Position numbers and translations under genes: made by a program. Under the pieces are notes generated by a model that was not told the DNA's origin, did not search any database, and saw nothing but the letters and a program-made list of their open reading frames with translations. From Blastocladiella emersonii ATCC 22665 (Eukaryota > Fungi > Blastocladiomycota), in contig JANHCV010000013.1 in NCBI GenBank assembly GCA_025594325.1, forward strand, positions 1,240,001 to 1,304,000: DNA of 64,000 bases. Direction: 5' to 3'. Position 1 is the stretch's first letter. Each line of letters starts with the position of its first letter. Below, piece after piece: positions 1,380 to 63,140 of the stretch.

Positions 1380-1403
1380 TCACGTGATTGATCGACGCGT
1401 CTC
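1380..1403 (-). promoter_or_regulatory. Composite motif GAGACGCGTCG-ATCAAT-CACGTGA
   Basis: Perfect copy of the recurrent MCB-like plus E-box motif, lying between the 3' ends of the two Harbinger genes. Confidence 0.55.
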
Positions 1404-1525
1404 CACCGATGCGTTCTGACCTCAGCGACGCGTCAAATCATCTAGAATCGCTTATCTAACGTTATAGTACTTGACAAATCAGTATATTACAGCATGCATG
1501 CGGGTACAACAATTATTTCGCGCCT

Positions 1526-2843
1526 TCAAAGATGGGTCCCACGAGCGGCCATGACGCGCCTGTACTCGGTCCAAAGAACATTTGCGATGCGGTTCCGAAG
1601 CGAGATACCGCGCTGACGAGCTCCGTCCAGCGAGGCCTCGAGGACAGCGGCCTCGTCGTCCTCCTCGTTCTCGTCGTCCAGGGGCTCGCGCCCACGCACT
1701 GGCGCCTCACGCGCCGCGTCCCGCGCGCGCCGGAGCTCCGTCTCGGCGTCGCGAAAGAAGGCGTCGCCGCCTTGGTTCCACTTGTTGATCATGTTGTGCA
1801 GCGTGCAGAGCGCGTACACAAGCTTGACTTGAGTCTTGATTGGGTAGGCCGCGCCAATCGAGAGGACGCGGAACCGCTTCTTGAGCACGCCAAAGATATG
1901 CTCAATGGAGTTGCGGAGCGACGCGTGACGCAGATTGAAAAGCTCTTCGCGGTTCTTAACTCTACGTACGTTGGTGAAGCAGATGAGATGGCGCCAACGT
2001 GATGGTCATGGCAGTGAGAACGTACCCATCCTTGCCGCGGGCAAACTCGCGAAGATGATAGCGGGTACCGCTGAAGGGCACGATGATGGACGTGCGGTTT
2101 GCGTAGCCGCCGTCGGCGAGGTAGAAGCGGCCGGCGGGGATCTTGAACCCACGGGCGAAGGCGTCCGAGAGCACGCGCGAGTCGTGCGCCTTGCCCTCCC
2201 ACCCTGCGAGAACGTAGGTGAAGTTCAAGTCAAAGTCGCAGGCAGCGAGGACATTTGAGGAGATGGTCCCCTTGCGGTTTCGGAACGAGTCGTGAAGCTT
2301 GGCGGGCACAACAAACGGGATGTGCGTTCCGTCAAGCGCGCCGACCGCGTTCTGGAACGGAGCGTATTTCGGGTCGTGGGCGATGCGCTCATGCACGGGC
2401 GTAGAATCGGACGGCTGGACAATGAACTCGGGCATCAGGCGGTACAGAGCGTCGAGCACCTGCTTCAGAACCCTGGACGCGGTCTCGCCAGAGATTTGGA
2501 ACCGCTCCCTGAGGTTGCGGTTGGTGCTGCCCTCGCCGGCCATGACAAGAAAAACCATGAAGCGCGCCTCGACGGACAGCTCGCGGCCGTCGGTGAGAAG
2601 GCCACGGTCGCGGAACAGGCGGCAGATGGCCTTGAAGGTCTCGCGGGGCATACGGGCGATTTCCGAAAAACGCGTTTTGCTGTTGCACGTCAGCAGCTCT
2701 TGAACCCACGACTCGCCAGAAAGCGTGGACGTGCGGATAGGCTCCCACGAGCGGCGCTCGTTGCGCGCAGCGAGACGTCGCAGGAGAGCGAGGGCGGCCG
2801 TGAGCATGAGGCCGCGCAGCTTGCGGTTGTATCCCTTGCCCAT
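1526..2843 (-). CDS. Harbinger (DDE_Tnp_4-type) transposase, about 417 aa, apparently intact
   Basis: Motifs GALDGTH, YLADGGY and FNLRHASLRNSIEHIFGVLKKRF. One intron at 1962-2025 (GTACGT...TAG) joins ORFs 1962..2960 and 1526..1888 in frame. Confidence 0.92.
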
Positions 2844-3090
2844 GTTGTTTGAGGGCTCGAGAACACGATGCGTGAGGTTAGGTGTTGATTCGTTGCAATA
2901 AGTGCGGCTGCAAAGAGGTGGGAAAGATTTTATTGCGGGGGGGGGGGGAGGGGCGTTCATCCAGCGGGGCGTTTGGTTCGCACGGCCGCTGAGATGAACG
3001 GGGGTGAGGTGAAACGTGGCAACATTTTCAGCTGATCCACCTGATCTGAACCAAACGGACCCTTATTTACAAATTCGACGGACAAAATCC

Positions 3091-3920
3091 TCAATGTGTA
3101 GGCTGCATAGCGAGCGCGTACACGGTCGGCGCGAGCCGCTGAAGCTCGGCGAGATGCTTCCGTTTAGTATCGGGAACCTGAGTCAGCTCGTTGAGCTGCT
3201 CGGCGGTGATAAGCTCGTCAAGGAATCCATTCGGCAGCAACCCGGAAATGAAAGTTGGAACTGGAGGCAGAAGCTTGAGGAGCGCGAAGGTGAGTGCCGC
3301 ATCGTGCGCGACGAGAAGCTGGAACACCAATCCCGTCATTCCGTCGTTCCGCTGCTGCTCCGCGTGTCCACTAAGCTCGGATCCGTAGCAATAAGGCTCG
3401 TTCTCGTCATCACTCTCAATACCGTTCATGGTATTTCTTTGTGTCGGGCTCGGGCTCGCAAAAGCCGAGAAGAGCGAGGCCATGTCCGTGTCATGGCGTC
3501 GACGAGAAGCGAAAACGTGTCGCGCCACACGGCTTCGTACGTGGGCGAGCAGCGCGGACACTCGTGAATGTGCGGAGCGAGCTTATTCTCGAACTCGGCG
3601 CGATAATAAAAGCGGGCAGTGGCCATGGCGCAGACCAGGTGTCCTGCGGCGCCCGTCTCACGCGAAAGTTCGAGGGCGCGGTTCCGCAGCTACGGTCGCG
3701 AGAACGTGGCCTCACCGAGAAGCGCGATGAGTAGGGTCGCTCTCCAGTCCCGAGGAAAGCGCAGGATCAGCCCAAGCGGAAGTTGCCGGGCGACGATAGA
3801 GAAGATTTCAAGCAGTTCGTTGTCCGAGTTGCGCTTGCCGTCCAAGCACACGTCGAGAAATGGGCCAAAGCGGAAACCGTCGTTTCTTGATTGGAAGATA
3901 TCGTGAGCTTTCATAAAATC
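3091..3920 (-). pseudogene. C-terminal-only duplicate of F-box-like/CxxC family (family 1)
   Basis: Fragments DGKRNSDNELLEIFSIV, LAPHIHECPRCSPTYEAVWRDTF and LAELQRLAPTVYA lie in different frames and match the C-terminal exon of the family 1 paralogues. No N-terminal part is present. Confidence 0.75.
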
Positions 3921-3964
3921 TTAGGATATTTCATTACCTCGTGTACAACTCTTTCCATTTTCCA

Positions 3965-9872: not shown

Positions 9873-10418
9873 CGCGGCAACGACTTTCGAGTCTCTTTCA
9901 AGCGATATCTAAATGATTCCAGTCTCTTCTTTTACAATTTGATTATATCTGAACAATACACCGTTGGTTGGCCTGGATCGACTGAGCGGGGGCTCGTGGT
10001 TACACAGCACGTGAGTGGCGCGGCGCGTGAACCCGACGGCCTTGCGGGTGACTCGAACACCCCATTGCGGAGTTTCTTTCCGCAAAGCTCGAAGATAATA
10101 GGCATTGGCTTCGTAGTAGAAGCTGAACTAATCAGTTTGAGGTCACACCTGGCACAGGTTACCCTGTTCGAAGCAGCGTTAGACCGCGGAGGCATTTCGC
10201 AAACTACATTCAAAGCAAATAAATCATTTCACGGCGATGATTTGCTGCGTCTTCGCCTTTTTCCTCTGGCCCCAAAGTATTCCGGGATGTGCGCGTGGAG
10301 CCACGTGCATCGGCCCACCGCGTTCCCACGGTTCCGCTACGCGCGCCGCCCGCCGCCGCGTCGCGACTTCTCCTCTCCGTAGCGCACCCTCGCTCTCAGG
10401 ACAACTTCACTTGCAGCA

Positions 10419-10655
10419 ATGAAACACCTAATGCAACGCGCGGCCCTGTCGTCGCTCACGATGGGCGACGTGCCGCTCGAGCCCTTGAACCTTGTGTGCC
10501 AGCTCGCTCAACCACGTCACACGGTGGCGACTTCGTCCAAGCTTTTCGCCCACGCTATCAATAACCGTGCCGTACACGCTTCTTGGTCGTTCCAGCAGGT
10601 CTTGCAACTCAGCACGAAGTTTCCTCCGCCCTCGGGTTACAATCCTCCCGATCTT
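10419..10655 (+). pseudogene. Family 1 gene, 5' part, interrupted by TIR element
   Basis: MKHLMQRAALSSLTMGDVPLEPLNLVCQL...ASWSFQQVLQL aligns with the N-terminus of the 16449 gene and shares the ACTTCACTTGCAGCAATG start context. Confidence 0.75.
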
Positions 10656-10980
10656 CAAAGTGAACAGGCGGGGCAAAGTTCCTTTGTAGCGGCGACAAAG
10701 TAAACCCGCAAAGGATTGCAAAGTAACTTTGGGCCAACAAAGTAATGCAAAGTTTCTTTGCGCAAGGGATTACTTTGCGGCCTTGAACAAGATTACTTTG
10801 GAAACGTTTACTTTGAACCCGCGCGCAAAGTGCCATGGGACCCGGAGCGCAAAGTTACGTTGCTGCACTTAGTGGTTCGGATAGCTGGTCGCGGCGGCGA
10901 GCAGCAGATTCGCCGCCTGATCCGCTCGCTGATGGGTCGGCACTGCATTGAAGTAGCAGCAGAAACAATTATTTATCGCT

Positions 10981-11823
10981 TCAGTTAAAGTCGTTGCCAC
11001 CGTTGGCCCCCGCCCCTGTCCCGCCATGCGGTTCCATGGCCGGATCGCCCGCGCCGGCCGTGTCAAGCTCGCTGTGCCGCGGGATCGGGACGCGCGAGAT
11101 GGTCCACACAAACTCGTTGTCGGCGGGCGCGTCGCGAGCCGCCAGCGGTGGCCGCCGCTCGTCAGGGCACACGCACGCGCGGTCGCGAATAGCGCGGATC
11201 GGCACGACAATGGGCCGCGTGATGTTAACGTAGCGCACGCGGCTAATACCCGCCACCACCGCCCGCGTCGCGGCCGCCGGATTGAGGTCGTGGTGGCGCA
11301 GCGGGTGCATGGCGAGCGGGTTCAGCGCGGCAAACGCGACGCCGTCGAGCTTGAAAAAGTCGGTGATTTGGCCGTAGATGGACGACATGGCCGGGTCCGG
11401 TTCCGGCATCACGAACCGCGTGTAGCGGTCCAGCGCGGGGAACGCGCCGGCGACCAAGAACATGCGATCCGCCACTGTCGTGGGGATCACGACGCGGACG
11501 ACAGCGTCCTCGCGACACTGGAGCGGCACGCTCGACAGCGTCGCCGAGTGGAACACGGACACGGACGCATGGTAAGCGTTGCGCGAGAGCACCTCGACGT
11601 CGAGCCGCAGCTTGCGGCGGAACCACGAGTACCCGATCGAATCCTCCGTAGCCGCCGATCCGTTGGGCTCGAGAAGCACCGCATGCGAAAAGGACGTGAA
11701 CGCTGCGGCGAGGTCGGTGGAGAGTGGGTGCGCGGTCGTGGTCCGGTGCTCGACGTGGGCCTCGCCCGAGTTGGACCCCCGTCGGCCGGGCAGCAGCGTG
11801 GCGATGCGCGGCACGGCGGCCAC
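10981..11823 (-). CDS. Possible C-terminal remnant of EnSpm/CACTA-type transposase
   Basis: 280-aa ORF inside the element. The segment REDAVVRV...SSIYGQITDFFKLDGVAFAAL...VRYVNITRPIVV resembles the YG(Q/E)I..(F/I) C-terminal region of CACTA transposases. No DDE core is visible. Confidence 0.4.
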   Translation of the reverse strand: MAAVPRIATLLPGRRGSNSGEAHVEHRTTTAHPLSTDLAAAFTSFSHAVLLEPNGSAATEDSIGYSWFRRKLRLDVEVLSRNAYHASVSVFHSATLSSVPLQCREDAVVRVVIPTTVADRMFLVAGAFPALDRYTRFVMPEPDPAMSSIYGQITDFFKLDGVAFAALNPLAMHPLRHHDLNPAAATRAVVAGISRVRYVNITRPIVVPIRAIRDRACVCPDERRPPLAARDAPADNEFVWTISRVPIPRHSELDTAGAGDPAMEPHGGTGAGANGGNDFN

Positions 11824-12803
11824 GGCGGCGCGGATCGTCTGGTCGAGCCTCTGATGGCGGCCGTAAGGTCGTGAAATTCGTCAACCGCGCGCTCCACCAC
11901 GGCGACCGTTACAATTGGGCGATTAGGAAAACGATACTAGCGAACGAGCATCACCCGCTCCCCATAGATCGCTGACAATGCGGAACAAGGAAGGGTACAC
12001 TGGGGGCGCCTCGTGGTGCACTCGAAGGCCTTATAAATAGCTTAGAACTTGTCTGACTTAAGATCCTTGCTTTCCGGGTAGTAGCCGGTCAGAAATCGCC
12101 TGAAGCAGCGTAAGGGTGGCGCTGTGTGGCGGCCTGGTCGAGCTGACAAGAGGTACAGGTTCGCCCAAATGGCGCGGTCTAGAGAAGGCTTTAATGTTGT
12201 TGATGCATTTGCAGTAAGTGACAAAGGTCCCGCGTCGCTGGTGTGTCGGGGTTCGGGAGAGAAGACGTGCGGCGGCCGGCCCGGTGGCAGCCAACCTGCA
12301 GCCAGCCCCGTCGCGGACTCCATTTCTGGACTTCGCCGCGCTCGGCCGCGCTCGTCCGCCATCCGTCGTTTTTCTGACGCTTCGTCGCCTTCCATCCACA
12401 ACACTCGTTCCTTGGGTGACCGACGCTGCGATGCCTGACTAGGTGCGTCCGTTAGACATCGCTTAGGAGTGGATTCGCAAGCTCGCTGGGGTCAACTGGG
12501 GCGATCCGATTCACGCGCGCTTCGACGCGCCCCCGCAGCCCCAGCCAGCAGTACCGTTGGTGCGGGTGATGAGGGAATTCCAGGTGGTGCGTTTTTGAGG
12601 GTGGATAGTAGTTTGCGCGCGAGCACCAAGACGTCTCGCGAGTCGTGGTGAGTGACGAGTCTGCGAGGCAGTGCGTTCTGTTTCCTTACGGGCACGAGGG
12701 CCAACGTTTGAGTATCTACGATTGCTTTTCTGCATCGCTTATGGTGGTCCGTGGTGGCGCGGACGCGTCGGGTGCGGCTCGGGGCGGACGCGCGAGACAG
12801 TGC

Positions 12804-12827
12804 GAGACGCGTCGCGAAAACACGTGA
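12804..12827 (+). promoter_or_regulatory. Composite motif GAGACGCGTCG-CGAAAA-CACGTGA
   Basis: Identical over 24 bp to 34909-34932. Confidence 0.55.
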
Positions 12828-14204
12828 TGCGCGTTTTTTGATCAACGCGCTGCGCGTTGGCCGCTTCGCCGCTTCGGCGGTGGACTCTGCGCTTCCGCGG
12901 CCGCCCGCCCCGCCCGCTCGCTCGCTCCCGCCCCGCCCCTACATAAGCGGGCGGGTCCCCTTGCACCGACTGACGTTCCCGCACACGCTCGCCGCCGCCG
13001 CCATCCCATCCGCCGCTCCACGCCGCCGTCGCTGCACACTCGACCCGCGCCCGCCGACCAAGTGGAGCTTGCCGCCCGACCGATCGACGCTACACGACGA
13101 CGCGCACCCGCCCTCGCACGCTTGGCTCCACGTCACGGTGCGCGTCCCCGCGACTCGCTCGTCACGGCGCACGCGCGCGACGGCGACGTCGGTCGCCCGC
13201 CCGCCCACCTCTCGTGGTGATGGGCGCGAGACTGACGTGGATGCCGCTCCGCCGCCGCCCTGCTCGCCGTCTCTCGCACATCCGCGCCCGCGCAGTGTGT
13301 CTCACTCGCTCTCGTCACGATCCCGTAGCTCGCGCGCCCCGCACCCGCGCTGAGTGGCCCGCGTAGCGCAGCCGCGTCGGTTGCCGACACGACCACGGCG
13401 AGCGGGTACGTCTCCTGCAAGCGCGCTGGGTCGCAGCTCAGTGTCTCACGTCCGATCGCTCGCGCTCGCTGCCCGTCTAGACGCGCGGAGACGGTGCCAA
13501 CTCAGCGCTCAAGCTTGACGAAGTCGCGTGCGGTCTCGGTACGATCGCGCTTCTCGCCTCCACCAGCGCGGCGATGACTAACTCGGCGCCTGCCGCGATC
13601 CGTTCCTTCTATTCGAGCGCTCAGGTGCCGCGGCGGCCAAGGCGGGCGCGACACGGGTACGTTCTCGCTCTGCTTGCACGACAGCTCCCTCGATCCCGCT
13701 CCTCACCTCGGTCTCCCGCGCTCGCCCCGCTGTAGCCTCGACCGAGCGCGTCAAGTGCTTCAAGATGACCACGCCCGCGAGTGACGGCGGCGGCGCGAGG
13801 ACCGCGGCAGCGGCGCGCGCGCGTGCATGGGCTCAACGCGGGCGCGGCGCGGGTGCGGTGCGGGCGGACCGTGGTCGTGGTCGTGGCGGCGGCGGTCGTC
13901 GCAGTACCCGCTTTTTTTTTGCGTCCCGTGATCCCTATACAAAGGTCCTTTGTATACTTTGGACGGATTCCTTTGTGAAGCTTTGAGGACGCTTAGGCCA
14001 AAAACCGCGCAAAAGGAACCGCAGTCCAAAGGATTCAAAGCGACTTGAACCGGCTCTCACCCAAAGTTTTCAAAGTAACTCAGTCGCCGCAAAGGACTCC
14101 AAAGTGACTTAGAAGTGTTCCGTCCAAAGGAAACGCAAAGTAAACTCCAAAGGGACTTTGCCAATCCTTTGTATCCTTTGGAGCCCGGGGCCCTTTTCAC
14201 TGTG

Positions 14205-16292: not shown

Positions 16293-16316
16293 GAGACGCG
16301 TCGGAATATCATGTGA
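16293..16316 (+). promoter_or_regulatory. Composite motif GAGACGCGTCG-GAATAT-CATGTGA
   Basis: About 133 bp upstream of ATG 16449, same orientation. Confidence 0.65.
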
Positions 16317-20144: not shown

Positions 20145-20635
20145 GCGATAGTTCAAGTCTGGTTGTTTGCTTCCTTGAGCATTTACTCTCGCGGCCGCTC
20201 CTCTCTATTGGGGCGTTTGGAGCACCTCCACTTAACTCCTACATAAATATCTTGAATGCGAACATTCTTTAAGTGCCCACACGCTTAGAAAGCAGCTCGT
20301 CTTGGCCGTTTCGCGACCGCTTTCCGTCACGTGAGTGGCGCGGCGCGGCGAAACGCGTACATCGTTTCGTCAACCATGGGCGATTCTACGTAAGCGACGC
20401 ACTAAGAGAAAATAACGAAAACGAGCATATCACGGGTAAAAGGTAGCTGTCCATCATCATGCGGGGCGTCCCCGTTCAGCGCGGCCACCACTTGCTCCCA
20501 CGGCGTCCATTCAATGGAACAAGTTGTTCCACTCAGCGTGCCGAAAAACAGAGCATACAAAAATATTGGGTAATCAAACATCAAACATCAAACCGGGACC
20601 AGGAAGCGGGCACGGTAGCGCTTCGTATCATTCCG

Positions 20636-26609: not shown

Positions 26610-26716
26610 TCACTCGCGGCTCTGAGTGAAGCCAGACTCGCGCAACCACGCGGCGACCCGCTCGAAACCAAGCTCGCTCGCGTTGCAAATCGCGAGGTCG
26701 AGAGCGATGCACGGCA
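26610..26716 (-). pseudogene. C-terminal end of family 2 gene, separated by TIR element
   Basis: PCIALDLAICNASELGFERVAAWLRESG matches PYHLALSKAEQLGFGKVTAWWRESG of the 8652 gene. Confidence 0.85.
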
Positions 26717-29700: not shown

Positions 29701-30039
29701 TCACGTCCATTCGTACACTCGGACGAGCTGCAGCAGCCGCGCTCGTGGAAACGGACATCACATCAGTGTTGCCATCAGTGAGAGCCAGCCAGCAAACTCT
29801 CGCTTGACAGCTCGCGACGCAAATGAATCCAGAACGACCTGACCCTGCACCGGAATTTTTGTTAGGTCTGTGCAAACTTATGATATCCTTGGGGAGCAGC
29901 ATTTCAACAAATAGAGTTGACCGGACGTTGGGTTCCAATCGGACAGGGTCGACCAGAAGCGTTGGCTGCCAGTTGGAGCTCGTCAAGCCACCATTTTGTT
30001 GGCTGCCAATTGGAAGGCTGGGGTGCGGGGACGGGCGTG
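26717..30039. mobile_element. 3323-bp TIR DNA element with 2-bp (CA) TSD, no recognisable transposase
   Basis: 42-bp TIR CACGCCCGTCCCCGCACCCCAGCCYTCCAATTGGCAGCCAAC (41/42 identical), subterminal TGGCAGCCAAC repeats, and CA on both flanks (26715-16, 30040-41). Excision restores the host reading frame. Confidence 0.9.
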
Positions 30040-34908: not shown

Positions 34909-34932
34909 GAGACGCGTCGCGAAAACACGTGA
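34909..34932 (+). promoter_or_regulatory. Composite motif GAGACGCGTCG-CGAAAA-CACGTGA
   Basis: Perfect copy, identical to 12804-12827. Confidence 0.55.
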
Positions 34933-40143: not shown

Positions 40144-40167
40144 GAGAGGCGACGATCAATCATGTGA
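40144..40167 (+). promoter_or_regulatory. Variant composite motif GAGAGGCGACG-ATCAAT-CATGTGA
   Basis: Same spacing as the perfect copies, about 133 bp upstream of ATG 40300. Confidence 0.4.
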
Positions 40168-40299
40168 TTGGAGCGTGACGCCTTCACGTCATGAGCAAGC
40201 CACCCTAGCGGATCGGACCCCGACTTCGACTCCCTTGTAGACCTGTTCGCAGACTCGCTCAAGGCAATGAAATCAAATGCAGAACTAGCACCACACACC

Positions 40300-43598: not shown

Positions 43599-43876
43599 AG
43601 GAGGCGGTGTGCCGTTGCTGCGGGAGAAGCGGTCTTCCGCGGGGCGACTCGACGGGAAACTCAGCGGTCCCATGGCTGCTCGTTTCTCTCTCCCAACCGG
43701 CAACCCGATCCTCCCATGTAACTCCACTGATCTTGCTATTACATGGCGCAACTATCGCCTGACGGAATTGCCTTGCAGACGTCAGTGTTGGCGCGCTTCA
43801 GGCCCTGTCCGGCGTGCAGCGTGTTGGCAGCTCAGACTTCGCGTCGCCGCTTCATGAACCACCTCATGCCCAGAAG

Positions 43877-45973: not shown

Positions 45974-45997
45974 TCACATGATTTCGCGACGCGTCCC
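45974..45997 (-). promoter_or_regulatory. Composite motif GGGACGCGTCG-CGAAAT-CATGTGA
   Basis: 81 bp upstream of ATG 45893, same strand. Confidence 0.65.
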
Positions 45998-49483: not shown

Positions 49484-49713
49484 TGCAGCAAGTCGATTCA
49501 TCCGTTTAGCATTGGCGGGTGAGGAGAGACCTGTGGAGCGAGAGGGCGGATGGCGCTGCGGAGCCGCGAAACCAGCGTTGGCGGCGTGAGTCGATCAAAC
49601 GGAAATAAGGAACGCGCGGATCACATGATAAAATGTCTCGCGTGTCTCACGCCCGACGCGTCGAGATCGGAGTGCGCAAGGAGCTCGCACCGAGCTTCAT
49701 ATACACCTCCCTT

Positions 49714-50865: not shown

Positions 50866-50889
50866 TCACATGATTTCTCGACGCGTCTC
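50866..50889 (-). promoter_or_regulatory. Composite motif GAGACGCGTCG-AGAAAT-CATGTGA
   Basis: About 144 bp upstream of ATG 50722, same strand. Confidence 0.65.
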
Positions 50890-52103
50890 CTGCCGCTTGC
50901 TCCGTGCCCCTCCGGCCTTTCCTAAGAGTGACCAGGCAAATCGTGCAAGACATGTACGAAATATTTATTTTTTAAACAATTTACGAATGGCAACCAAACT
51001 CGATACTAAGGAGGAGCAGGAGCAAGAGAGCGCGCGACACATGTCAGCATTGCTTTGCTACTTTCGTCACGGCGGCGACGCGCATGATTCGCCCTTACAA
51101 CGCTGGCCACGTACCGCTCGCGCACAGCGACGCGTTGATACATGACAACTCTGAGCGAAGCAGCGAGCGACCTCGTACCCCGTGGTCATAGCCGCGCACA
51201 GCCTCTCAAAGGCCATGGCCGCTGCTTGACCCCGGCTCGACTGGAACCGCGCTTTGCCACGCAGCCATGCGAAACTGCGGTTGATCACCTCAGCTCATGG
51301 ACCGGATCTTAGTCTGCCAGCACGGGACAACCTGGCGGCCCAGCGGCGCCAGCTCGAGATGCGCCATGCCTTTCCATCGTCCTGCGAGTTCGCTCACTCG
51401 TGGCCCCTCGAGGTCGCCGCACGCACGTCCGCGTTCCGCGCCTCCGTCTCACCAAACTCGCTTTCGCTTCGAGCAACCGCTTCGTGTTAGCCGTGCCGCA
51501 ATACGCGATCCTCTCAACGTCGAGCCGAGATGCGCACCGCGCCGCTCGCATTTATCTCAATTCGAGAAACGGACGCGACGCGCGACGCGCGCGACCACGA
51601 TGGCCGCGGCCGTTCTGGTTCACGCTCCTGCACCTTTGCTCTCCGGCCGTCGTCGATCCTTGACGTACAGTTCAGGTCCTGTTCGCGGCGCCAGTGTGAT
51701 CTGCGACACGAGCTCGCCTCGCTTCAATCCAACCGTTGCTCAGCGGCGGCCGAGGCCGCGGCCTGGATCCCGCCTTGCCCGCAGGCCACGTCGCGTCCGC
51801 GCACCGCGGCGCTTTTATCGTTTCTTTCCTTGCGACGCACTTCGTGCGTCTACGTGTTGTTCCACAAGGGTCGGAGCGGCGAGCAGCTCCGAGCTCACGG
51901 CAATGGCCGCGCGACGTTCAAGAGCACCGCGGCCGCTGTTCATGGCTGTGGCCAGCTCCTACCCTGGCTCCGACCCGCGTCCATCGCGCAACTCTCACTC
52001 TCAACCAACTTCGAGCTCGACAGGGAGAATAATATATGCAATGAACCCGCAACAACAAAACGAAATATACACTCACTTACCAACCTCACCACGCACCACC
52101 CTC

Positions 52104-54467
52104 TTAGTGATGCTCACCACCACCATCATGATGCCCACCATCCTCGCCGCCGTCGAACCCGCCGACATGGTGGAAGTTCCCGTGGTCGTCAACGACGAGC
52201 CCGAGCTCCGCCATATCCGCATGGTCGGCCCCACCATCACCACCCGCCGCGAGATCCGCGGCCCCGAAATCGTGCACGAGCGCCGCGACGTCCGCGTCGT
52301 CCATGCCCGCGCCGCCGATATCCCACCCGCCGGCGCTCGGCGCCGTCGCGTCCTCGATGGCCGCGTCGAGCGCGTGGAACTGCGCCGCGACGTCATCCGA
52401 CGCGGGAGCCGAGGTGTCGTCGACGGCGTTGTGCGCCGCGGATGCGGCGGGAGCGGCAGCTGGCGAGTCGGCAGTGGTGCTGGGCAGGGCGGCGGGGAGC
52501 GCCGCGGGCAGCGCGGACCCGTCGGCGAGCGTGACGGCCTCGGAGTGGGCCGTGGTGCCGAGGTCGAGCGTGAACCCGGCGTCGGTGGCGGGGTTGGCGT
52601 CCGTGAGGTGGTTGGCGGTCACCGCGGCGCCGGCCGCCGACGAACTCGACGCACCGGAATCGTCGACGAGCTTGTTGGGCACCGTCGACGTCGTAGTATG
52701 CGCGGGCGCCTGCGGCGCCGACTGCACGGCGTTAGCCTTCATGAGGTTCCCGACGAGGGCGCCGGCGGTGGCGAGCCCACCGATGGCGGAGACGGCCGAG
52801 ATGTAGGGCATGGCCTTCTGGATCCAGGGCTGCTGGGGTGCGTTCTGGGCCTGGACGGCCTGGGCGATGGAGGCGGGCATGAAGAGCATGAAGGACGACG
52901 CGAGCGAGGGTTTGGGTGCGGCGCCGGGCACGTCCCAGTCGACGAGGGTGAGCGCGCCGTCTTTCGCATCCGCCACCAGAATCTTCTTGGCCTCGGGGTG
53001 CGCGAGGGCGAAGGCGAGCGGGTTGTGCGGGAGCTTGAGGAACTCCCAGACGGCGGCGTGGTCGATGTCGGCGCGCTCGGTGAGGGTGCCGAAATCCTTG
53101 TCAACGGCGAGGTACAGCTCCGTGTCGGCGCACTGCAGGACCATCTTGGCCTTGTGGCCCTGGTTGAGGTCGAAGGTGTCGACGCGCCACATCTTGGTGT
53201 CGGAGACGAGCGAGATGGTGAAGTAGGCGGCACGGTGCGACTCCTTCTTGATGTCGAACTTGGCGAACTTGAAGGCGCCCGCCGTGACCTTGGCCTTGGT
53301 GTCGCGCTCAATGTACCGCTCCTTGATGTCGACCATGGACACGGGCGTCGTCAGGTTGGCCGTCGGGCCCGGCGGCGGGCGCGGCGGGCCGCCGGGACCG
53401 GGCGGGCCGTTCGGACCAGGACCCATCATGGGCGGGCGCGGGCCGCCGGGGCCGCCGGGACCACCCATCATGCCGGGACCGCCGGGCCCGCCCATCATCG
53501 GACCGCCGGGCCCGCCCATCATGGGCGGACGCGGGCCGCCGGGGCCCATCATGCCAGGACCGCCGGGGCCGCCCATCATCGGGCCGCCGGGACCGCCCGG
53601 GCCGCCCATCATCGGCGGGCGCGGACCGCCGGGACCGCCAGGACCGCCAGGGCCCATCATGGGCGGGCGCGGCGGGCCGTTCATGCCCATGGGACCGGGA
53701 CCGGGACCGCCGTTGTTGTTCATCATCATCATGGGTCCGGGACCGCCAGGACCGCCGGGGCCGGCCATGCCCGAGGGCGGGCGCATGCCGGAGCCGATGG
53801 ACGAGACGACGCCGTTGTTGGCGGGCGGGGAGGGCGTGCGCTGGGCGGCGGGCGCGGCAGCGGGCGGGGCGGCGGTGCTCTGGCGCGAGTTGGAGGGCGG
53901 GCGGGCGTTCGAGGTCGGGCGGCCGAGCGACGCCCCGGCGGCCATCTCCATCTTGAACATCTTCTCCCAGCCGGCATCGAGACTGCCGAGCGCGAGCGAC
54001 CCGTCCTTGACGATGAGGACGCGCTTGGTCGGGTGCGTCAACGAGAAGAAGCCGCCCTCGAACGCCTGCATGGTCCAGATACAGAACGAGTTGGGGTTCT
54101 GGACGACCTTGAGGACCGCGTCCTGCTCGGTGCCGACGTAGCGCGGCGGGGTGCCGAACCGGAACAGGACCTGGACGCCCGACTCGGGCTTGTACAGCGG
54201 GACGGGCGGCTGCTGCGCGACGTAGCGCAGGATCGACACGTGCGCGGCGGGCGTCACGGGCGCCGACGACGACGCCCACGTGTAGGCGCCGGCGGCGGAC
54301 GCGGCCGTGGCGTCGGCGATGGCGAGGTGCTGCTGCCACGCGTTGCGCAGGACCACCATCTTGAGCGGCGGCGGCGCGGTCCCCGACGTGGTGCCGGGCC
54401 GGTTGGCGGCGGCGTTGGCCGACTCGGGCCCGCGCGCGGGCGGCGAGTTGCCGCGGGACTGCTGCAT
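52104..54467 (-). CDS. Protein with two beta-trefoil/fascin-like segments separated by a Gly-Pro-Met-rich linker
   Basis: Long GC3-biased ORF. Segments PRYVGTEQDAVLKVV...IWTMQAFEGGFFSL...RVLIVKDGSL and LQCADTELYLAVDKD...AVWEF...KILVADAKDG flank (GGPGGPRPPMM)n, followed by an acidic Ala-rich tail. Confidence 0.6.
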   Translation of the reverse strand: MQQSRGNSPPARGPESANAAANRPGTTSGTAPPPLKMVVLRNAWQQHLAIADATAASAAGAYTWASSSAPVTPAAHVSILRYVAQQPPVPLYKPESGVQVLFRFGTPPRYVGTEQDAVLKVVQNPNSFCIWTMQAFEGGFFSLTHPTKRVLIVKDGSLALGSLDAGWEKMFKMEMAAGASLGRPTSNARPPSNSRQSTAAPPAAAPAAQRTPSPPANNGVVSSIGSGMRPPSGMAGPGGPGGPGPMMMMNNNGGPGPGPMGMNGPPRPPMMGPGGPGGPGGPRPPMMGGPGGPGGPMMGGPGGPGMMGPGGPRPPMMGGPGGPMMGGPGGPGMMGGPGGPGGPRPPMMGPGPNGPPGPGGPPRPPPGPTANLTTPVSMVDIKERYIERDTKAKVTAGAFKFAKFDIKKESHRAAYFTISLVSDTKMWRVDTFDLNQGHKAKMVLQCADTELYLAVDKDFGTLTERADIDHAAVWEFLKLPHNPLAFALAHPEAKKILVADAKDGALTLVDWDVPGAAPKPSLASSFMLFMPASIAQAVQAQNAPQQPWIQKAMPYISAVSAIGGLATAGALVGNLMKANAVQSAPQAPAHTTTSTVPNKLVDDSGASSSSAAGAAVTANHLTDANPATDAGFTLDLGTTAHSEAVTLADGSALPAALPAALPSTTADSPAAAPAASAAHNAVDDTSAPASDDVAAQFHALDAAIEDATAPSAGGWDIGGAGMDDADVAALVHDFGAADLAAGGDGGADHADMAELGLVVDDHGNFHHVGGFDGGEDGGHHDGGGEHH

Positions 54468-55358
54468 GTTGTCTTGCGGGATGGAAGGAAAGGCGCGCGC
54501 CGCGAGCGAGGCGAGCGTGTTGGACGAGGTCGGGATGAGCGGGAGCTGCGGCGGCGTCGACGCGGGGGACAGGTGCTGATGCGTTGCAGTGTCTGAGGGT
54601 GTCGCCGATAGCATGTGCTACGGGAGTTGCGGGAAGAGAGAGAGGACGGTTAGCGGCGGTCGGCGGTCGGTCGACGCGGTCTTCGGGGAACCGCTGCGGT
54701 CCGCTGCGGTCCGCTGCATCGAAACCACTCCCCGCCGCTGCGTTCTCGCCGCTGCCCGCTGTCCGCCGCGTTCCCGAGCACACATCGATTGTTTTCATTT
54801 CAGCACCGGCCTCGCGGCGCACGCGTGCGTGCGGGGTGACGCACCCAAGCCCGCCCGCTGTCGCCGTCGTGGCTGAGCACGGCGCCACGCCCGAATGAAA
54901 TCAATCACGGCGTGCGTGAGCCCGCGCGGACATGAACTTCGCGCGCCGGGCCGCTGGCGGGCAATCTCGGTCGGCAGCGGGGAGGGGAGGGAGGGGAGGG
55001 ATCGCGGCAGCGGTGCTGTGCCGCCATGGCCGCGGCCATCGCCGAACGTACGTCGTGGTCAGTGTCCGTCGAGTCGGGCCGGCGGCAGCCTCGTATACTG
55101 ATGTGTATGCTACGCTGGTGTGTTGGTCTGGGAGAGCGCGGTTCCTCGCCGTCCCCAGCGCCCTTGAGCCGGCCACGGCCGCGTATACATATATAACCCG
55201 CCGCCGTCGCCGTCGCCGTCGCCGTAGCCGCGAACCGCGGCGCGCTGCGGTGCCGCGACCGCCGACCGCAGCCTCTCTACTCCCGACTCACCCACTCGCT
55301 CGCCGACCATCCTAAGGGTTACACCCGCCAATCCACATGTATTCGTCACTCACCAACG

Positions 55359-58138
55359 TCAGATCTTGCGCTTCTTGGCCAGCCGCGCCATGGCGCCCTC
55401 CTCCTCCTCTTGCTTGGCCGACTTGGCCGCCTCGGCCTTGGCCCGCTCGGCGACCTTGCCGAACACGGCTGCGGGCACCTGCTTCTGCGCCACCTCGGTG
55501 ACGCCCTCGTCCTCCTCCTCGCCGTCCCCGTCACCGGCGCCGGACGGCACGAACGCGAGCCGCTTCTCCTCCTCGTCCTTCTTGGCCTTTTCCGCGCGCT
55601 CGGCCGCGTCCTTGTGCCGCTGCTTGGCGCTGGCCAGCTGCGCCGCGATATAGTTGACCTCGGTGTTGAACTGCGCCTGCACGCTGCGCTTCACGCGCAA
55701 CATCTCCTTGAACGTATCCTCGTTACCGTACTGCACCTCGAACGCGTGCCACGCCGTCCAGTATTTCGGCATCCCGCGCGGGTCCGCGAGCGCGGCGCCG
55801 TGCGCGAACACGGCGCGCGCACGGTCCACCTCGCCGAGGCGGAGCTCGAGCGCGGCAAACTCGAGACACGTCGCGGCCGCCGCCTTGTCGGGGAGCTGCG
55901 GGAGCGCGCGCTCGTACACGTCGCGTGCGGCGACGAGCCCGAAGTGCGTGGTGGCGACGTGCACCGCGTGCGCGTACAGATGGCGGCGGGCGTCGCGGGG
56001 CGCGGCGCGGCACGCGCGGTCGAGGACGCGCATCGCGCGGCGCACCTGCCCGTGCTGCAGCTCGACCGCCGCGTAGGGGACGTACAGCGCGCGCGCGTGC
56101 TGCGCCGGGCAGTCCGCGACGGCTTGCTCGAACAGGTCGCGCAGGCGCTCGAGGTGCACGCCTGACTGCGGCGCGGGCTCGCCCAATTCCTCGCCCGAGA
56201 GGACCGCGGAAACGTCGACGTCCAGCGCGTACCGGCGCATGAACTTGGCCAGGTACACGGTCCACAGGTCGAGGGCGACGGGCCACTTGAACGCGTCGAT
56301 GCCGCGCTCGTACACCTTGAACGCGTCCTCGTAGTAGTCGTGCGCCTCGAGGTACAGCGCGTAGTTGACGACCACCTGCGGCGTCGCGATCTTGAGGGCC
56401 AGCATCGCGTCGTACGCCGCCACGACCGTGTCGCGCGTCCCGAAACACTCTTCGAGGTCGACGCAGTACGACCACAGCGCGAGCGACTTGCACAGGCGGC
56501 GGTGCGCGGGGACGCGCGTGTCGCGGAAGTCGATGGTGGCGGCGCCCGCGGCGGGGATCGAGCACGCGCGGCCCAACAGATCGCGCGCGGCCGCGACGTT
56601 GCCCGCGCGCAGCTCAAAGTCGGCGTAGGCCGTCCACACGTTGACGAGCTCGCCGACCGTCTTGTACTCGGTGGTGCGCTTGACGGCGTGCTCGAACACG
56701 GCGCGCGCCGCGTCGCGGTCGCCGCGCTGCGTCTCGTGGTAGCCCGCGTACGCGGTCCACAGCTCGTCCATGCCGCCCGTCGCCTGCTTCGGGTGCACCG
56801 TGGCGAGCGCGCGCTGGTAGGTTTGTTCCACCTCGTGGGCGGGCACGAGCGAGGCGCGCTTGATCCACTCGAGCACGTTGTGCGGGTTCTGGCGCAGGAG
56901 CACGTCGTTGACGAGCACGGGCCGCGCGGCCATGAGCCGGTCGAGCCGCGTGAGGCGGAGGTCGACGTCGACTTGCGCGGCGTCGCGCGCCGTGGTGGCT
57001 GCCGCGAGGGCCGCGGCGTCGCCCGCTTTTTTCGCACGCTTGGCCGCCTTCTTGGCCGCGCCGAGCGTCTCGAGGTGCGCAGCGACGACCTGCTCCTCGA
57101 CCTCGAGGTACGCGTCGAACAGCTGGGTGAAATCTCGGAGGGTGACGACGGCGCGGAGGGCCTCCTCGAAGACATTCCGTGCGCGCTCGATGCGGCCGGC
57201 CGCGAGCCAGTACCGGGCGAGCGCGGTCCAGAAGGGCGCGGCGTGCTGCGGGAACCGGCGGATGCCCGCGCGCAGAATGTCGTCGACCGAGACGGCGGTG
57301 AGCGCATCGGGGTGCTGGACGGCGACGGTGCACAGCTTGTCGAAGAGATCGTACGACGATTTACCGCCAGAATCGGTCGACGTGGAGATGGCGCGCATGA
57401 GCTGTGTCGCGGCGCCGTTGTAGTCGCCGAGATCGAGCAGCAGCTTGATGTACGCGTAGTGCTGTTTCGGCTCGAGCTTGAGGTGGCGCTTGTGGACGTG
57501 TGCGGCGAGCGGGCCGCCGACACCCTCGGCCCAGGGCAGGTACAGGTCCCAGACGCGCGGGTGCTGCGTGGTCGGGAGCGCGCGCAGGGCGGCGTCAAAG
57601 GCCTCGCGGATCAGCCCCACGCGGTGCGGCAGCTCCTTTGTCAGCACCCCCAAATAGTCGGTCCACAGGCGCGGCATCTTGTGCAGGGTCAGGAGCGCGC
57701 GGGCGTAGCACCCGTGGAGCCGGGTGGCCTCGGCGTCGCGCGCGTGCGGGTCGGCGACGGACCGGAGCCCCGTGCGCGACCAGTCGAGGTACGCCTTCCA
57801 CAGCTTGTAGGACCCGGGCAGCGTGCGCACGGCGCGCTCGTACAGCAGCGCGAGGTGCGAGCGCGGGGCGCGGCCGAGCGTCACGGCGCCCAGCTTGTGC
57901 TCGAGGTACCGCACCCACGCGCGCACCGAGTACGGATCGCGCAGCAGGTCGTTTTCGAACGGCAGGTCGTCGTCGGCCTGGGGACGCGGGGATGCGGGTT
58001 AGCGGGTGAGGGTGCGTGATGATGGGTGGGAGGCCGTACAATGGTGCGCAGCGCAGTAGCCTTGGCGGCAGCGAGCGCGTCGGCCGAGAAGAACGGCGCT
58101 GCCGGTGGTGCGGAAGCGGGTGGGCCGTCCACGTCCAT
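55359..58138 (-). CDS. SYF1: Pre-mRNA splicing factor SYF1/XAB2 (HAT repeats)
   Basis: DLPFENDLLRDPYSVRAW, LYERAVRTLPGSYKLWKAYL, KMPRLW, TPQVVVNYALYLE, FKVYERGIDAFKWP and VQAQFNTEVNY. Intron 57978-58039. Confidence 0.95.
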
Positions 58139-58465
58139 TCCGATAAAAGAGCTGCGGCGGCGGGGCGCGGGGTCAGCATTTCGGCGGCCGCGCGATCGGA
58201 TGCATCGTGGTCCATTGCACGCACTTGGGGCGGGCGCGGCGACGGGGAGCGCGCGCGGGTTTCGGGCAGGGTTTCGGGGCGATGAGAGCGGACTCGGCGA
58301 GCGGCCGCAATGTCGGTGCGGTTGCGCGGGAAAGCCGTCACCTGAGAAGGCGTGAGTGGCGAGCCGCGCGCCCTCCAAGGTCCGTTCTCCCGGGCCCGCC
58401 TTCAACGCTGCCCGCTCCCTCCACCGACGCCCTCTCCCCCAACCCACACCCACAACGCTACTCAA

Positions 58466-59120
58466 ATGAACATCTCGGCCCACGACAGCAGCATCCTCGA
58501 CCTCATCTTCAGCCCCGGCGCCCACGGCGCGCCCGCGCCCGCCCCGCCAAAGCCCGACCCGGCGCGCCCGAGCCCCTCAGCCCAGGGTCCGTCCTCCCGC
58601 CCTCTGCACCCAGCACCAACTGACACCCCAACCCGCCGTAGCCATCGCCGCCCTCGACCCCGCCACCGCGTCCGAGATGCGCCGCCTCGAGGCCCGCGGC
58701 ATCGAGCTGGCCGAGACCGCCGCCGACACGCCCGCTGCCATCGCCGCCTTCACGTCCGCGCTGGCCCTGTGCCCGGCGAACGCCTCGGTCCTCAACAACC
58801 GCGCCCAGGCGTACCGGCTTCTGGGCGATCTCGACGCGGCGCTCGCCGACCTCAACGCCGCCATCGCGCACGGCGCGGGCGACAGTTTCGTGCTCAAGCA
58901 GGCCCACACGCAGCGCGCCGTCGTGTACAAGTCGCTCGCGCAGCCCGACCAGTCGCTCGCCGACTTCGAGGCCGCCGCGCGCCACGGCAACGAGATTGCG
59001 CGGATCGCCGCCGTCAAGGAGAACCCCATTGCGCAGCTGTGTAACGCCATGGTCACGGACCTCATGGCGCAGTACCACGCGCCGCCACCTTCTGCTGCTG
59101 AGGGCGAGAAGAAGAACTAA
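58466..59120 (+). CDS. TTC36: TPR protein, TTC36-like
   Basis: HDSSILDLIFSP N-terminus, ASVLNNRAQAYRL...DLNAAI, QAHTQRA, DFEAAARHGN and NPIAQLCNAM. Intron 58587-58641. Confidence 0.75.
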
Positions 59121-59131
59121 TGTACATGGAT

Positions 59132-61376
59132 TTACTTGCTCCCCGACCGCTCCATGAGCCGCGACCCCGACGACCGCAGGTACGACGCGGCGTTGGGCGG
59201 CGGCCAGAACGCCGTCGGGATCTCGCTCACCGTGGTCGCCTTTGAGCTCGTGCTCTCGTCCAGCGCCACCGTGCTCTGCGACGCGCTCGCACTCGCCGTG
59301 GTCGTCTCGGTCGCCACGCTGCTCGCGCTCCCCGACACCACCCGCCGCACCTCAACGTTTCCGGGCGGTGGCGGCGAGCTCGGCCGCACGCTCGCCTGAC
59401 GCTGCCTCCCCGCCGATGAACCGGGTCGGTGTCCAGCGGGACTGGCTGCCGCGCGCCGCGACCCGACCAGCTTGCTCCCCGCCGCGTTGCTCGCCGCCGA
59501 CACGGCAAACACGTGCGTCGCGAGCTCCGCGATCTTGCGCCGCACCGCCAACGACCGCCCCGCGTGTTCGCCGTCCGACGGCAGCTACTCCGCCCAATGC
59601 GTCAGTCACGGCGTCACCGCGAGTGAGGTAACGCGTACCTTGAGCTCCTCCCTTCTCCTCTGCTCCTGCAACGTGCCCCACTGGCCCGGCGGGACGTACC
59701 ACGCGCCGCCGTACCTGGCGCCGGGCGCCATCGCCTTCCCCTCCCCCACCCTCTTCCCTCCCCCACCGGCGCCGCGCCACGCCGGCCGCACCGACACCCG
59801 CCTTCTCGCCGCCGCCACGGCCTCGTCGCGCTCGCGCATCGTCGCCGCACACTCGTCGGACCGTTCAACCCGCATCACCTGCTCCGCCGCCGTGGGGGGC
59901 ACGTGCCGGTCCACGCGCACGATGAAGTGCGCCGCGTCGCTGCCCGCCGTCCACTTGGCCGCGGCCGCGGAGGCGGGGGTCGGCGGCGCGCCGCTGGCGC
60001 GGGAGGAGGTGGGGGAGGGGAGGTTCAGCTGCGCGCGGTAGTGCTCGAACACGGACGTGCCGGGTTTGCGGTCCGACGGCTCTGCGGCGGCGGGTGGTGG
60101 TGGGGGAGGTGGTGGTGCGAAGTCGGCCGGCGAGGAGGGGAGGGGGATGGTCAGCGGGTGGTGTGGTTTCTGCACCACGGTGCTCGGCGACGCGCCCAGC
60201 GTCGATGGTCGCCGGCTCGGCGCTTTGGCCGCGGACGAGGTCCGTCTTGACGCGGTCGACGACGTGGGCACCGTCGTCGATCCGGCCCTCGACGCGCGCG
60301 ACGGCGGCGGCGGAGCGGGCGTCTCCCCCACCACCACGGCCGCCGCGGTCCCCGTCCCCGCGTCCCGACTCGTGACGACGAGGCCGGAGTACTTTTTCCT
60401 TGGCGGCATGCCGCCCTTGCCCTCTGTCCCCTCCTCCCACGCGTACTGGTTCCACGCGCCGCCGCGGTACTGGTGCGCGAGCAAGTGTCCGTCGGTCCCG
60501 CAGATGGAGTTGGCGCGCGACCGCGTGTGCGGCGACGGCGCGCGGACCGAGTTGCGCCGCGACCCGATCAGCGGGTTTGGGACGAGAACCGGGATCACGA
60601 GCTCCATGTACTCTTGCAGGTGTCTACGGTTTGGCGGGGCGTGAGTGAGTGAGGGGTGTGGGAGGGAGAGGGGGACGGACCGCCACAGGCCAGGGTACGA
60701 CGACTCGACCAGGTTCGACATGCGCTCGACGCGGTCGTCCTCGATATCTATGTTCGTGGTCGTGAGTCTCACCCGCGCCCAGTAGATCCGCTAGCGTACC
60801 CTTCTCGTGCTCAATCGTCGCCGCCTGCTCCGCCACCGCCCCGCCCCTCGGCACCACGCCCGCGCCCGGCTGCTGCTCGTGCCGGAACAGCCCGCGCGGG
60901 CCGAGCCAGAGATCGTGCCCGAGCGCGGCAACGAGCTGGAGCACGCCCTCGACATCCATGGGCTCGCAGCGGTACGCCGCGTACCCAGCATGGTCCGCGG
61001 CCTCGCGGTGCGCAAACGCCGCGAGACACGCGCACAGCTCCTCCTGGATCGGGCTCAGGTACACGTCGTCGTCGGGGTCCGTCGACATGGTCTCGCTGCC
61101 GAGCAGGGATTCCGAGGGGAGGCGCGAGCTGGACGAGCCGGCGGTCGCGAGGCGTAAGGTGGAGGGGAGGGAGGCGAGCAGGCCCTCGACGCCGACGCGG
61201 CTCGTCGCCTTCACGAGCGTGCGGACGGCGAGGACCAGCATGTGTCGCTCCAGATGCGACCACAGGCACTCGGGCTCGTTTGAAGCGGGCGCGGTGGTGG
61301 CGGCGGGGGTGCATGACGGGGACGGTGGCCGGCGCCGGAGCAGGGCCGCGGGCGGGTCGCTGACTTTGAAGTGCAT
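59132..61376 (-). CDS. Multi-exon hypothetical protein
   Basis: GC3-biased exons joined at GTACGC/GTCCGT donors (near 60797, 60665 and 59640). Globular N-terminus, Pro/Ser-rich middle, GAWYVPPGQW motif. Exon boundaries are approximate. Confidence 0.55.
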
Positions 61377-61520
61377 TGGTTTACGTTTATGGGGAGGAGA
61401 GAGCGAAGACGGAGACGTGCGCGTGCGAAGAGTCGTCCTTGCCGCGTCGCGTCGCGTCGCGTCGCGAGACGGGGACATCTCCCACCATCGCGCGTCGCGT
61501 TCAATAAAAACCCAATCTAT

Positions 61521-63011
61521 TCACGACGTCGACAACGACCCGAGCGCGCGTCTTAGGTCCTGGATCGGCTCGACAGGCAGGCCCTGCATGACAGCCTCCA
61601 TCTTGGCGTACACTGCTCCGCGTCGCTCCCACTCGGCCAACCTCGCCCGGACCGCGGCGTGCGCCTCGGCCTCGTCGGCCAGCTGCTTCCTGACAGCCGC
61701 GAGCTCGGCCTCGACCTTGGCGACCTGCGCGCGCATCGCGGCCGCCTCGTGCCGTGCCTCGGTCACCTCGCCGCGCATCCCGGCCGCGGCCGCCGCCTCG
61801 GCCTCGCCGCGGTCGCGCTCCTGGCCCAGCTCGTCGTGCAGCCGCATCGCCGCGAGCTCGCGCGTGTGCATCGCGTCGTGCGCCTGCGCGAGCGCGCGGT
61901 CTTTCTGCTCCACCACCGCCTTGGCCGCGACCAGCTCCGCCGTCAGGTCGCGCACGCGCCGGTGCAGCGTCTCGGTCTCCTCGACCTTGGCCGCAACACG
62001 CACCTCCGCGTCCCGCGAAACCCGCGCGAGCTCGGCCTCCGCGGCCGCGAGCCGCCCGCCGACCCGCGCGTGCTCGCCCAGGAGCTCCTGCATCTCGGCC
62101 TCGCACCGGCGGCGGACCTCGGCCTCGTGCGCGAGCGCGAGCTCGACGTGGCGCAGCTGCGCCGCGGCTTTCGCGCGCGCGGCCTCCGCGTCGCGCGCCG
62201 CCGTCTGCGCCGCCTCGAGGGCGAGCTGGACTCCGGCGTGCGACTCGGCGCGCACGCGCAGGTCCGTGACGACTGCCTGCGCCTCGTCGTGCAGGGAACG
62301 CCACTTTTCCTCGCGCGCGGTCGCTGCGGCCACGTCGGACTTGAGGCGAACGCACTCGGCCTGCGCCGCGGCCGTCGCGGCTTGCAGGGTTTCGACGGTC
62401 TGCTTCGCGCGCGCGGCCGCCGAGGTGAGGCGCGAGACTTCGGCGTGTTTCGCGGCGACCTGCGACTCCCACTCGGCCGTGGCGCGGAGCAAGCGCCGGT
62501 GCGATTCCGCGAGGTCGTCGCGGACCTGGGCGAGCTCGGTCTCGAGGTCCCGCGCGCGCGCGGATTCGGACGCCGCGGAGGCGGTGGCCGCGGCGGTCGC
62601 GGCGTCAGCGGCGGACAGGCGGTCTTGGAACTGGCGCTTCAGCGCGGTCACGTCCTCGGTGGCTTCTTTTTCGGACAGGGACTTGTTGCTCCGTCTACAC
62701 GGCACGCGTGTCAGGTGTGCGGCGAGAGGGAACGCGGTGAGCGTGACGTACAGGAACCGCGTCTCGAGCTCGAGCAGGTAGATCTGCTGCTGCAGCGACT
62801 TGACAAAGTCGTCCTGGGTCTTGCGCTGCGCCGCCTTGGACGCCGACGACATGGGCGAGGGCTTTGAGAGAGAGCCCGTCTTGCCGCTCGCGCCTACACA
62901 CGGTCACACCGCGTCAGGGCTCGTCGGGTCGGCAGGTCCGGGGCGAGCAAGCGGACCAGGAAACACGGTGCCCTTGACAGGGCTCTTGGCGGGGAACGCG
63001 CTAAAGTTCAT
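61521..63011 (-). CDS. Coiled-coil protein, unknown function
   Basis: Ala/Glu/Arg-rich heptad pattern with DDFVKSLQQQIYLLELETRFL motif. Probable introns at 62862-62909 and near 62695-62750. Confidence 0.65.
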
Positions 63012-63099
63012 GGTGTCGCGGAATGCATGTGCTTTCGGTTGTGTAGGTGGTGCGGTTGGTGGAGAGGAGAAGCGGTGAGGTGACGCGACGTGCGCGGCG

Positions 63100-63140
63100 G
63101 AACGCGTCGAGCAATCACGTTTTGTCTCACGACGCGTCTC
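63100..63140. promoter_or_regulatory. Variant double composite motif (ACGCGTCG-AGCAAT-CACGTTT with a second CGACGCGTCTC)
   Basis: Two ACGCGT cores flank an E-box-like site about 90-130 bp upstream of ATG 63011. Confidence 0.4.

Follow-up and report, generated by a model that had tools for sequence, protein, structure and literature searches.

Introduction

Fungal MBF-type factors bind ACGCGT and SBF-type factors bind CGCGAA, and E2F sites overlap these sequences (PMC4862756). We describe here a motif, GACGCGTCG-N6-CAYGTGA, that joins a half-site of this kind to an E-box variant at a fixed distance. It was found in a 64-kb stretch of DNA (the window) from the fungus Blastocladiella emersonii ATCC 22665 (assembly GCA_025594325.1) and near paralogous genes on other contigs of the same genome. 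The left half resembles the MluI cell cycle box (MCB; ACGCGT) and the Swi4/6 cell cycle box (SCB; CRCGAAA) of fungal MBF/SBF: it holds ACGCGT within the palindrome GACGCGTC, the junction reads CGCGAAA in 5 of the 14 sites on which our description of the motif rests, and extra ACGCGT and CGCGTT words are clustered in the flanks. It departs from these boxes in that the targets are ORFan families and not replication or G1/S genes, in that ACGCGT is present in three quarters of ordinary promoters here, and in that a conserved GA prefix makes the half asymmetric.

The right half, CAYGTGA, is the reverse complement of the yeast centromere DNA element I (CDEI)/Cbf1 site RTCACRTG. Like the sites of the Cbf1/USF class (CDEI itself and the M-box TCATGTGA of MiT/TFE), it accepts both CACGTG and CATGTG and needs a flanking A. 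Unlike them, it is tied at a 6-nt distance to a second element, and its A/T flank is obligatory. Paired short elements with constrained spacing and orientation that define a regulon are represented by yeast Cbf1-Met4-Met28 (RYAAT beside CACGTGA), Pho4-Pho2, and the polymerase A and C/rRNA processing elements (PAC-RRPE). The B. emersonii motif has this architecture, an E-box set beside a second short element, but differs in its partner and spacing, a stricter register (N6 in 14/14 sites), lineage-specific targets, and some transposon-borne copies. A literature search found no paper on this composite, nor on promoter motifs of B. emersonii. The distinctive features of the combination are its rigidity, the A/T spacer, the ORFan targets, and the transposon-borne copies.

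Results

The window contains seven perfect copies of GACGCGTCG-N6-CAYGTGA, compared with none in 100 dinucleotide-preserving shuffles. All seven lie where an original prediction made on this DNA had placed them (1380−, 12806+, 16295+, 31455+, 34911+, 45974−, and 50866−), and inspection of open reading frames (ORFs) bore out its claim that the copies are noncoding. When up to three mismatches were allowed, there were 11 matches against 3.3 expected; beyond the perfect copies, these were 27677− and 40146+ (two mismatches each), 63101+ (three mismatches), and a palindromic echo at 27691. Scanning the distance between GACGCGTCG and CAYGTGA from 0 to 30 nt across the window gave seven occurrences at N6, one at N26 (the variant at 49621), and none elsewhere. 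In 204 kb, ACGCGT-N8-CAYGTGA occurred 10 times, with 0 to 3 occurrences at every other spacing.

The 14 sites share the pattern G(12/14)-A(11)-GACGCGTCG-NN-A(11)-W(14)-A(13)-W(14)-CAYGTGA, giving a full motif of GA-GACGCGTCG-NN-AWAW-CAYGTGA, or about 24 nt. All 14 canonical sites have the N6 spacing, and the spacer reads NNAWAW in every one; it is half constrained, with four A/T positions despite a genome of 60% G+C. In the seven perfect copies it ends in AW without exception, as had been claimed. The GACGCGTC palindrome with its ACGCGT core is intact in 11 of the 14 sites and CAYGTGA is present in 11, with both C and T at the Y position. There are 14 GACGCGTC palindromes in the window, half of them within the composite. 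An overlapping CGCGAAA word (SCB/E2F-like) is present in the three window copies for which it had been reported, but since just 5/14 sites have this overlap, it is not a defining feature of the motif.

Conservation does not extend beyond the motif itself. Alignment of 320 nt around each window copy confined it to the ~24 nt. BLAST of 1.2 kb around each copy returned shared flanks that were paralogous coding sequence, plus transposon- or repeat-borne exceptions. The flanks were unrelated for five of the seven window copies and for the gene-linked copies on other contigs.

Four perfect copies and one two-mismatch copy precede a gene on their own strand. The copy at 16295 to 16316 (+), which by contig depth lies in single-copy DNA, is 132 nt before the ATG at 16449 of a family 1 gene (16449 to 17678, +; 409 amino acids [aa]; no Pfam family). 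The copy at 31455 to 31476 (+) is 102 nt before the ATG at 31579 of a DUF4470 gene (31579 to 34158, +; 859 aa), within a 446-nt divergent intergenic region bordered on the other side by a family 2 gene (ATG 31133/31103, minus strand). On the minus strand, the copy at 45974 to 45995 is 92 nt before the ATG at 45881 of a family 1 gene (41784 to 45881, −), and that at 50866 to 50887 is 138 nt before the ATG at 50727 of a DUF4470 gene. The two-mismatch copy, with a GAGGCGACG half, lies at 40146 to 40167 (+), 99 nt before the ATG at 40267 of a family 2 gene (40267 to 41532, +; 421 aa; weak ankyrin signal and an Allomyces homolog). All five distances fall within the 80 to 145 bp given in the original prediction.

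The other sites in the window are more varied. A split variant at 49621 to 49662 (−), about 120 nt before the ATG at 49501 of a DUF4470 gene, carries CATGTGA with its A/T flank at 49621 to 49627; GACGCGTCG is 26 nt upstream of this, and the half at the canonical upstream position has decayed. The perfect copy at 34911 to 34932 (+) is an orphan, located about 130 nt past the end of DUF4470 reading frames with no intact ORF downstream; its 24 nt are the same as those of the copy at 12806. Among the proposed variants, 27677 and 40146 stand as two-mismatch copies and 49621 as a split form with an intact CATGTGA. The fourth, a three-mismatch look-alike at 63101 to 63122 (+) in the GC-rich core compartment, is indistinguishable from chance.

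As an independent sample, we used six loci (L001 to L006; 140 kb) on five other contigs of the same genome, chosen via paralogs; the paralogs of the window DUF4470 protein were all from B. emersonii ATCC 22665 (GCA_025594325.1). Paralog-linked copies of the motif were recovered on four other contigs. Two copies have one mismatch each. From the first (L002:9871, +), it is 108 nt to the annotated start codon of P0002; from the second (L001:7399, −), it is 92 nt to the start codon of a family 1 gene that lacks annotation and was located by tblastn. A perfect copy is about 120 nt before an unannotated 548-aa family 2-like ORF (L003:18662, −), and 102 nt separate a copy with two mismatches (L006:12600, +) from the ATG of a DUF4470 gene.

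The nine canonical copies lie 92 to 138 nt (mean, 110 nt) upstream of a start codon, and the CAYGTGA half is gene proximal in 9/9 (P = 0.004 [by a binomial test]). In two divergent gene pairs (31103−/31579+ in the window and 18540−/19017+ in L003), the motif is about 100 to 120 nt from the gene it points at and about 330 nt from the other. Counting the composite as present if it was co-oriented and within 200 nt upstream of the start, we found it in 9 of 26 family promoters and in 0 of 28 ordinary promoters (P = 6e-4 [by Fisher's test]). Downstream of the motif come loosely placed CGCG and CACG words, then a pyrimidine-rich tract (0.6 to 0.7 pyrimidine at +40 to +110 from the motif start), and then a TGCAA/ATGCA box near the start codon. 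Judged by general fungal promoter layout, the motif would sit where an upstream activating site is expected, ahead of the probable initiation zone.

The two halves differ in their distribution, and each is also found alone in promoters. In this genome, ACGCGT behaves as a generic promoter word: within 300 nt, ordinary promoters had 21 occurrences against 7 expected. No cell cycle gene set specificity was found for it: 21/28 ordinary genes, with mixed functions, have it in the 500 nt upstream, and the composite's targets are ORFan. CAYGTGA, concentrated 50 to 150 nt upstream, was present in 16/26 family promoters versus 5/28 ordinary ones (P = 0.002), and CATGTG in 14/26 versus 1/28 (P = 4e-5); ordinary promoters are also enriched in CACGTG. 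With ACGCGT generic and CAYGTGA family biased, the specificity lies in the E-box variant, above all CATGTGA, and in the rigid register.

The genes behind the motif belong to fast-evolving, lineage-specific families: family 1, family 2 and its relatives, and a MYND-less DUF4470 family. The claim that these are three unrelated families holds as far as tested. They form separate blastp clusters, and hhalign of family 1 against family 2 gave a probability of 0.1%. In P0002, the N-terminal stretch that precedes the DUF4470 region had no similarity to the DUF4470 query. No homologs of family 1 were found in 5.8 billion clusters or 1.84 billion representatives, and an exact look-up of the window family 2 protein gave no match. 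Pairs of paralogs had ratios of nonsynonymous to synonymous divergence (dN/dS) of 0.27 to 0.59 and dS of 1.1 to 2.0. The former implies purifying selection on the proteins and the latter saturation of neutral sites; the family genes are thus real, and promoter flanks that cannot be aligned are to be expected. That 16 specified bases nevertheless stay intact in many promoters indicates selection on the motif or its repeated fresh acquisition. Separately, we considered whether the LPxE(h)xxxI(h) N termini of families 1 and 2 are F-boxes and rejected the idea, as no Pfam F-box match appeared even at an E value of 5 and the families are unrelated by hhalign.

Embedding of the motif in longer dispersed repeats, which the original prediction had listed among the findings that would refute it, was seen for two of the seven perfect copies (1380 and 12806) and for the variant at 27677, and not for the other five perfect copies. 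The prediction had mentioned neither the transposon around 1380 nor the repeat DNA around 12806. The copy at 1380 to 1401 (−) lies in a PIF/Harbinger transposon, between convergent genes for a Myb/SANT-like protein (84 to 743, +) and a DDE_Tnp_4 transposase (1962 to 2960, −). Positions 838 to 3066 of the window are 97.8% identical to L002:18982-21201 on another contig, where the motif copy is duplicated at L002:19525 (−); given two such similar copies on different contigs, the element has probably been active recently. The copy at 12806 to 12827 (+) is in multicopy repeat DNA (~10.6 to 14.2 kb) that splits a family 1 gene, with the 5' end of the gene at 10419 and the remainder resuming near 14113. 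Among the source sample's contigs, summed depth is 2 to 10 times higher over 10.6 to 14.2 kb, where the contigs are fragmented and many have variant letters; by the same measure, 14.2 to 16.4 kb, including the copy at 16295, is single copy. The repeat (10600 to 14200) has no Pfam-recognizable ORF, and there is no ATG within 260 nt downstream of the copy at 12806. The two-mismatch copy at 27677 to 27698 (−), whose E-box half has decayed, is in a 3.3-kb element bounded by 49-nt inverted repeats (26710 to 26758 and 29998 to 30046). No intact ORF follows the copies at 1380 and 12806 or the variant at 27677. When the motif was considered as a transposon end or dispersed repeat (miniature inverted-repeat transposable element [MITE] or Helitron), the lack of flank similarity in five of seven window copies and in the gene-linked copies of the other loci spoke against it; as read from these flanks, the motif is not a transposon end.

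A second fixed motif, CACGTGAGTGGCGC-RR-CGCGT, occurs in the same DNA. In the form CACGTGA-GTGGCGC-RR-CGCGT(C), it has the same two types of half-site in reversed order with a conserved GC-rich spacer. The window has copies at 10008 to 10028 (+), 390 nt before the family 1 ATG at 10419, and at 20328 to 20348 (+); the loci have copies at L001 5047+ and 21380−, L002 6372+, L003 21523+, L005 3301+, and L006 12615+. Two of the copies are 70 to 90 nt before family gene starts (L002 6464 and L006 12724), and several are at gene 3' ends. At L001 5032/5047 and L006 12600/12615, the CACGTGA of the second motif is common to a degenerate main motif, forming a three-part MCB/E-box/MCB arrangement. We also asked whether the second motif might be a transposon terminus; this is not supported, as the flanks are unrelated on both sides and the two window copies are in direct orientation.

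Other signals were noticed near start codons. Ordinary promoters in the window and in L001 to L006 have a CT-rich tract and then TGCAAC, often GCAACGTAA(Y), 10 to 40 nt before the start. CGTTGC/GCAACG, a candidate initiator-type element, was observed 30 times against 8.8 expected and in 20/28 ordinary promoters. Between −60 and +40 relative to the start, 18/20 family genes have an ATGCA(A) box, compared with 5/27 ordinary genes (P = 1e-6); examples are the genes starting at 10419, 40267, 8652, and 50727 in the window, at L003 6964 and 19017, and at L001 7306. In families 1 and 2, the box frequently reads ATGAAAYACTNNATGCAA, and in DUF4470 genes, it is frequently a tiny upstream ORF.

Accessory stretches have 55 to 62% G+C and are mostly unannotated in the public record, and the core has 65 to 72% G+C (window positions 1 to 51000 versus 51000 to 64000; L001 to L006). 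At L005 7123-8808 (−), an annotated 505-aa gene with a Cas12f1-like_TNB (TnpB/Fanzor-type) domain in the precomputed Pfam annotation adjoins a DUF4470 gene. In L006, a family 2-related gene is present as an inverted duplication (10001 to 11652, +, and 16513 to 14862, −) around a DUF4470 gene, and in the public model P0005 ("Vacuolar morphogenesis protein 6"), the left family 2-related copy and the DUF4470 gene appear to have been fused. A reading of the accessory compartment as an endogenous giant virus was rejected, since there were no viral hallmark domains among the ORFs scanned.

Discussion

We favor reading the motif as a composite, promoter-proximal cis-regulatory element of B. emersonii, with two factors held in fixed register as the likely mechanism, and give this reading a probability of about 0.62. 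As originally proposed, the element is composite, with fixed spacing and orientation, close to promoters, and common to unrelated accessory families. Two separable sites in fixed spacing and orientation were what we looked for in a composite, and these were found (N6 in 14/14, orientation in 9/9). The proposal had left open whether the motif defines an undescribed regulon or a core promoter; its presence in 9/26 family promoters and 0/28 ordinary ones favors the regulon and disfavors the core promoter. That the motif acts as a transcriptional cis-element of a family-specific regulon seems likely. Under the proposed mechanism, a factor reading the generic CGCG/MCB-like promoter word would bind the left half and a basic helix-loop-helix (bHLH)-zipper protein of the Cbf1/USF class would bind CAYGTGA beside it, with the A/T-rich spacer serving as a shape or contact element. 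The response would be confined to promoters with both halves in register, giving the families a common expression program. Naming this specific pair, a CGCG-box factor plus a bHLH-zipper, as the readers of the motif is tentative, and the co-operating MBF/APSES, E2F, or bHLH factors to which the original prediction pointed are likewise hypothetical.

Several observations weigh against this reading. Promoter activity is judged from position only, and the public proteome lacks most family genes of the window. Two family promoters were picked up beside motif copies, which inflates the enrichment; in the promoter set chosen by homology only, the composite is present in 8/24 versus 0/28 (P = 0.001). 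Many paralogs lack the motif, including P0001, P0003, P0004, w25393, w22935, and w8652, so that it marks a subset of each family. For three of the seven perfect copies, there is no intact ORF downstream, and two of these three lie in transposons or repeats. Some copies, at gene 3' ends (1380, L001:21416, and L001:5032), point antisense. Finally, there was no motif copy in a 20.9-kb locus around the Allomyces family 2 homolog, a sample too small to date the motif or infer its absence.

Could a single protein with a long recognition surface, such as a multi-zinc-finger array or a transposon-derived Myb/SANT protein, read all 24 nt, with the half-site matches being coincidental? The likeness would be to REST on its fixed-spacing bipartite neuron-restrictive silencer element (NRSE) or to CTCF on its site, and the near-continuous information across the 24 nt (GA prefix and AWAW spacer included), the invariant spacing, the asymmetry of the left half (GAGACGCGTCG, with GAGAC recurring nearby), and the copy in a Harbinger element with a gene for a Myb/SANT-like protein would all suit it. 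We nevertheless consider it unlikely. Both halves are near-perfect palindromes of the type bound by dimeric factors. Two separable modules are favored by the wide occurrence of each half alone in promoters, by decayed copies that have lost just one half, and by the variant with the halves 26 nt apart, which survives before an intact paralog. Slightly less probable still is a role in repression or chromatin organization, in which the motif would tag accessory, repeat-rich DNA (as a silencer, insulator, or heterochromatin nucleation site), or a role as an antisense promoter. Its confinement to the lower-GC accessory compartment, where public annotation calls no genes here, and the copies in transposons and antisense at gene 3' ends are compatible with such a role, but the 92- to 138-nt distance and the 9/9 orientation fit an upstream activating site and are not required of a boundary or silencing mark.

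The mobile copies raise another explanation, that copies are functionless passengers, which transposons or gene conversion have dispersed or which came along when promoters were duplicated. The Harbinger element around 1380 with its 97.8% identical counterpart, the multicopy DNA around 12806, the element with terminal inverted repeats around 27677, and the identity of 12806 and 34911 over 24 nt are what this would predict. It is improbable given that the flanks are unique for five of seven window copies and for four gene-linked copies on other contigs, that the 14.2- to 16.4-kb region is single copy, and that four unrelated protein families have the motif at the same distance and in the same orientation; moreover, with dS above 1.1 between paralogs, an unselected 16-base pattern would not survive. 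Least probable is that B. emersonii uses the motif generally, as a core-promoter or positioning element with no regulon specificity. The fixed distance to start codons and the enrichment of ACGCGT and CACGTG in ordinary promoters would accord with it, but those promoters have the composite in 0/28 cases and CATGTG in 1/28, and they have common elements of their own, namely, CT-rich tracts and TGCAAC(GTAA).

The composite may be part of a broader arrangement. A single rigid MCB/E-box composite would wire a lineage-specific regulon made up of fast-evolving ORFan families, and at least two to three transposon families would carry this composite as well. Mobile elements may then spread (or exploit) the switch and recruit new genes, and the second motif would be written in the same grammar. 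This larger picture is speculative, and we think it rather doubtful. Almost nothing is known of promoter grammar in zoosporic fungi, and here a long, scannable, rigid motif singles out species-specific gene families, most of which are missing from public annotation. It may therefore serve as a handle for finding such genes, for predicting their co-expression (e.g., by life cycle stage), and for fishing for the proteins that bind it. The motif would also be a natural case in which a second site in fixed register lends specificity to a generic promoter word, and its transposon-borne copies would allow a test of regulon rewiring by mobile DNA.

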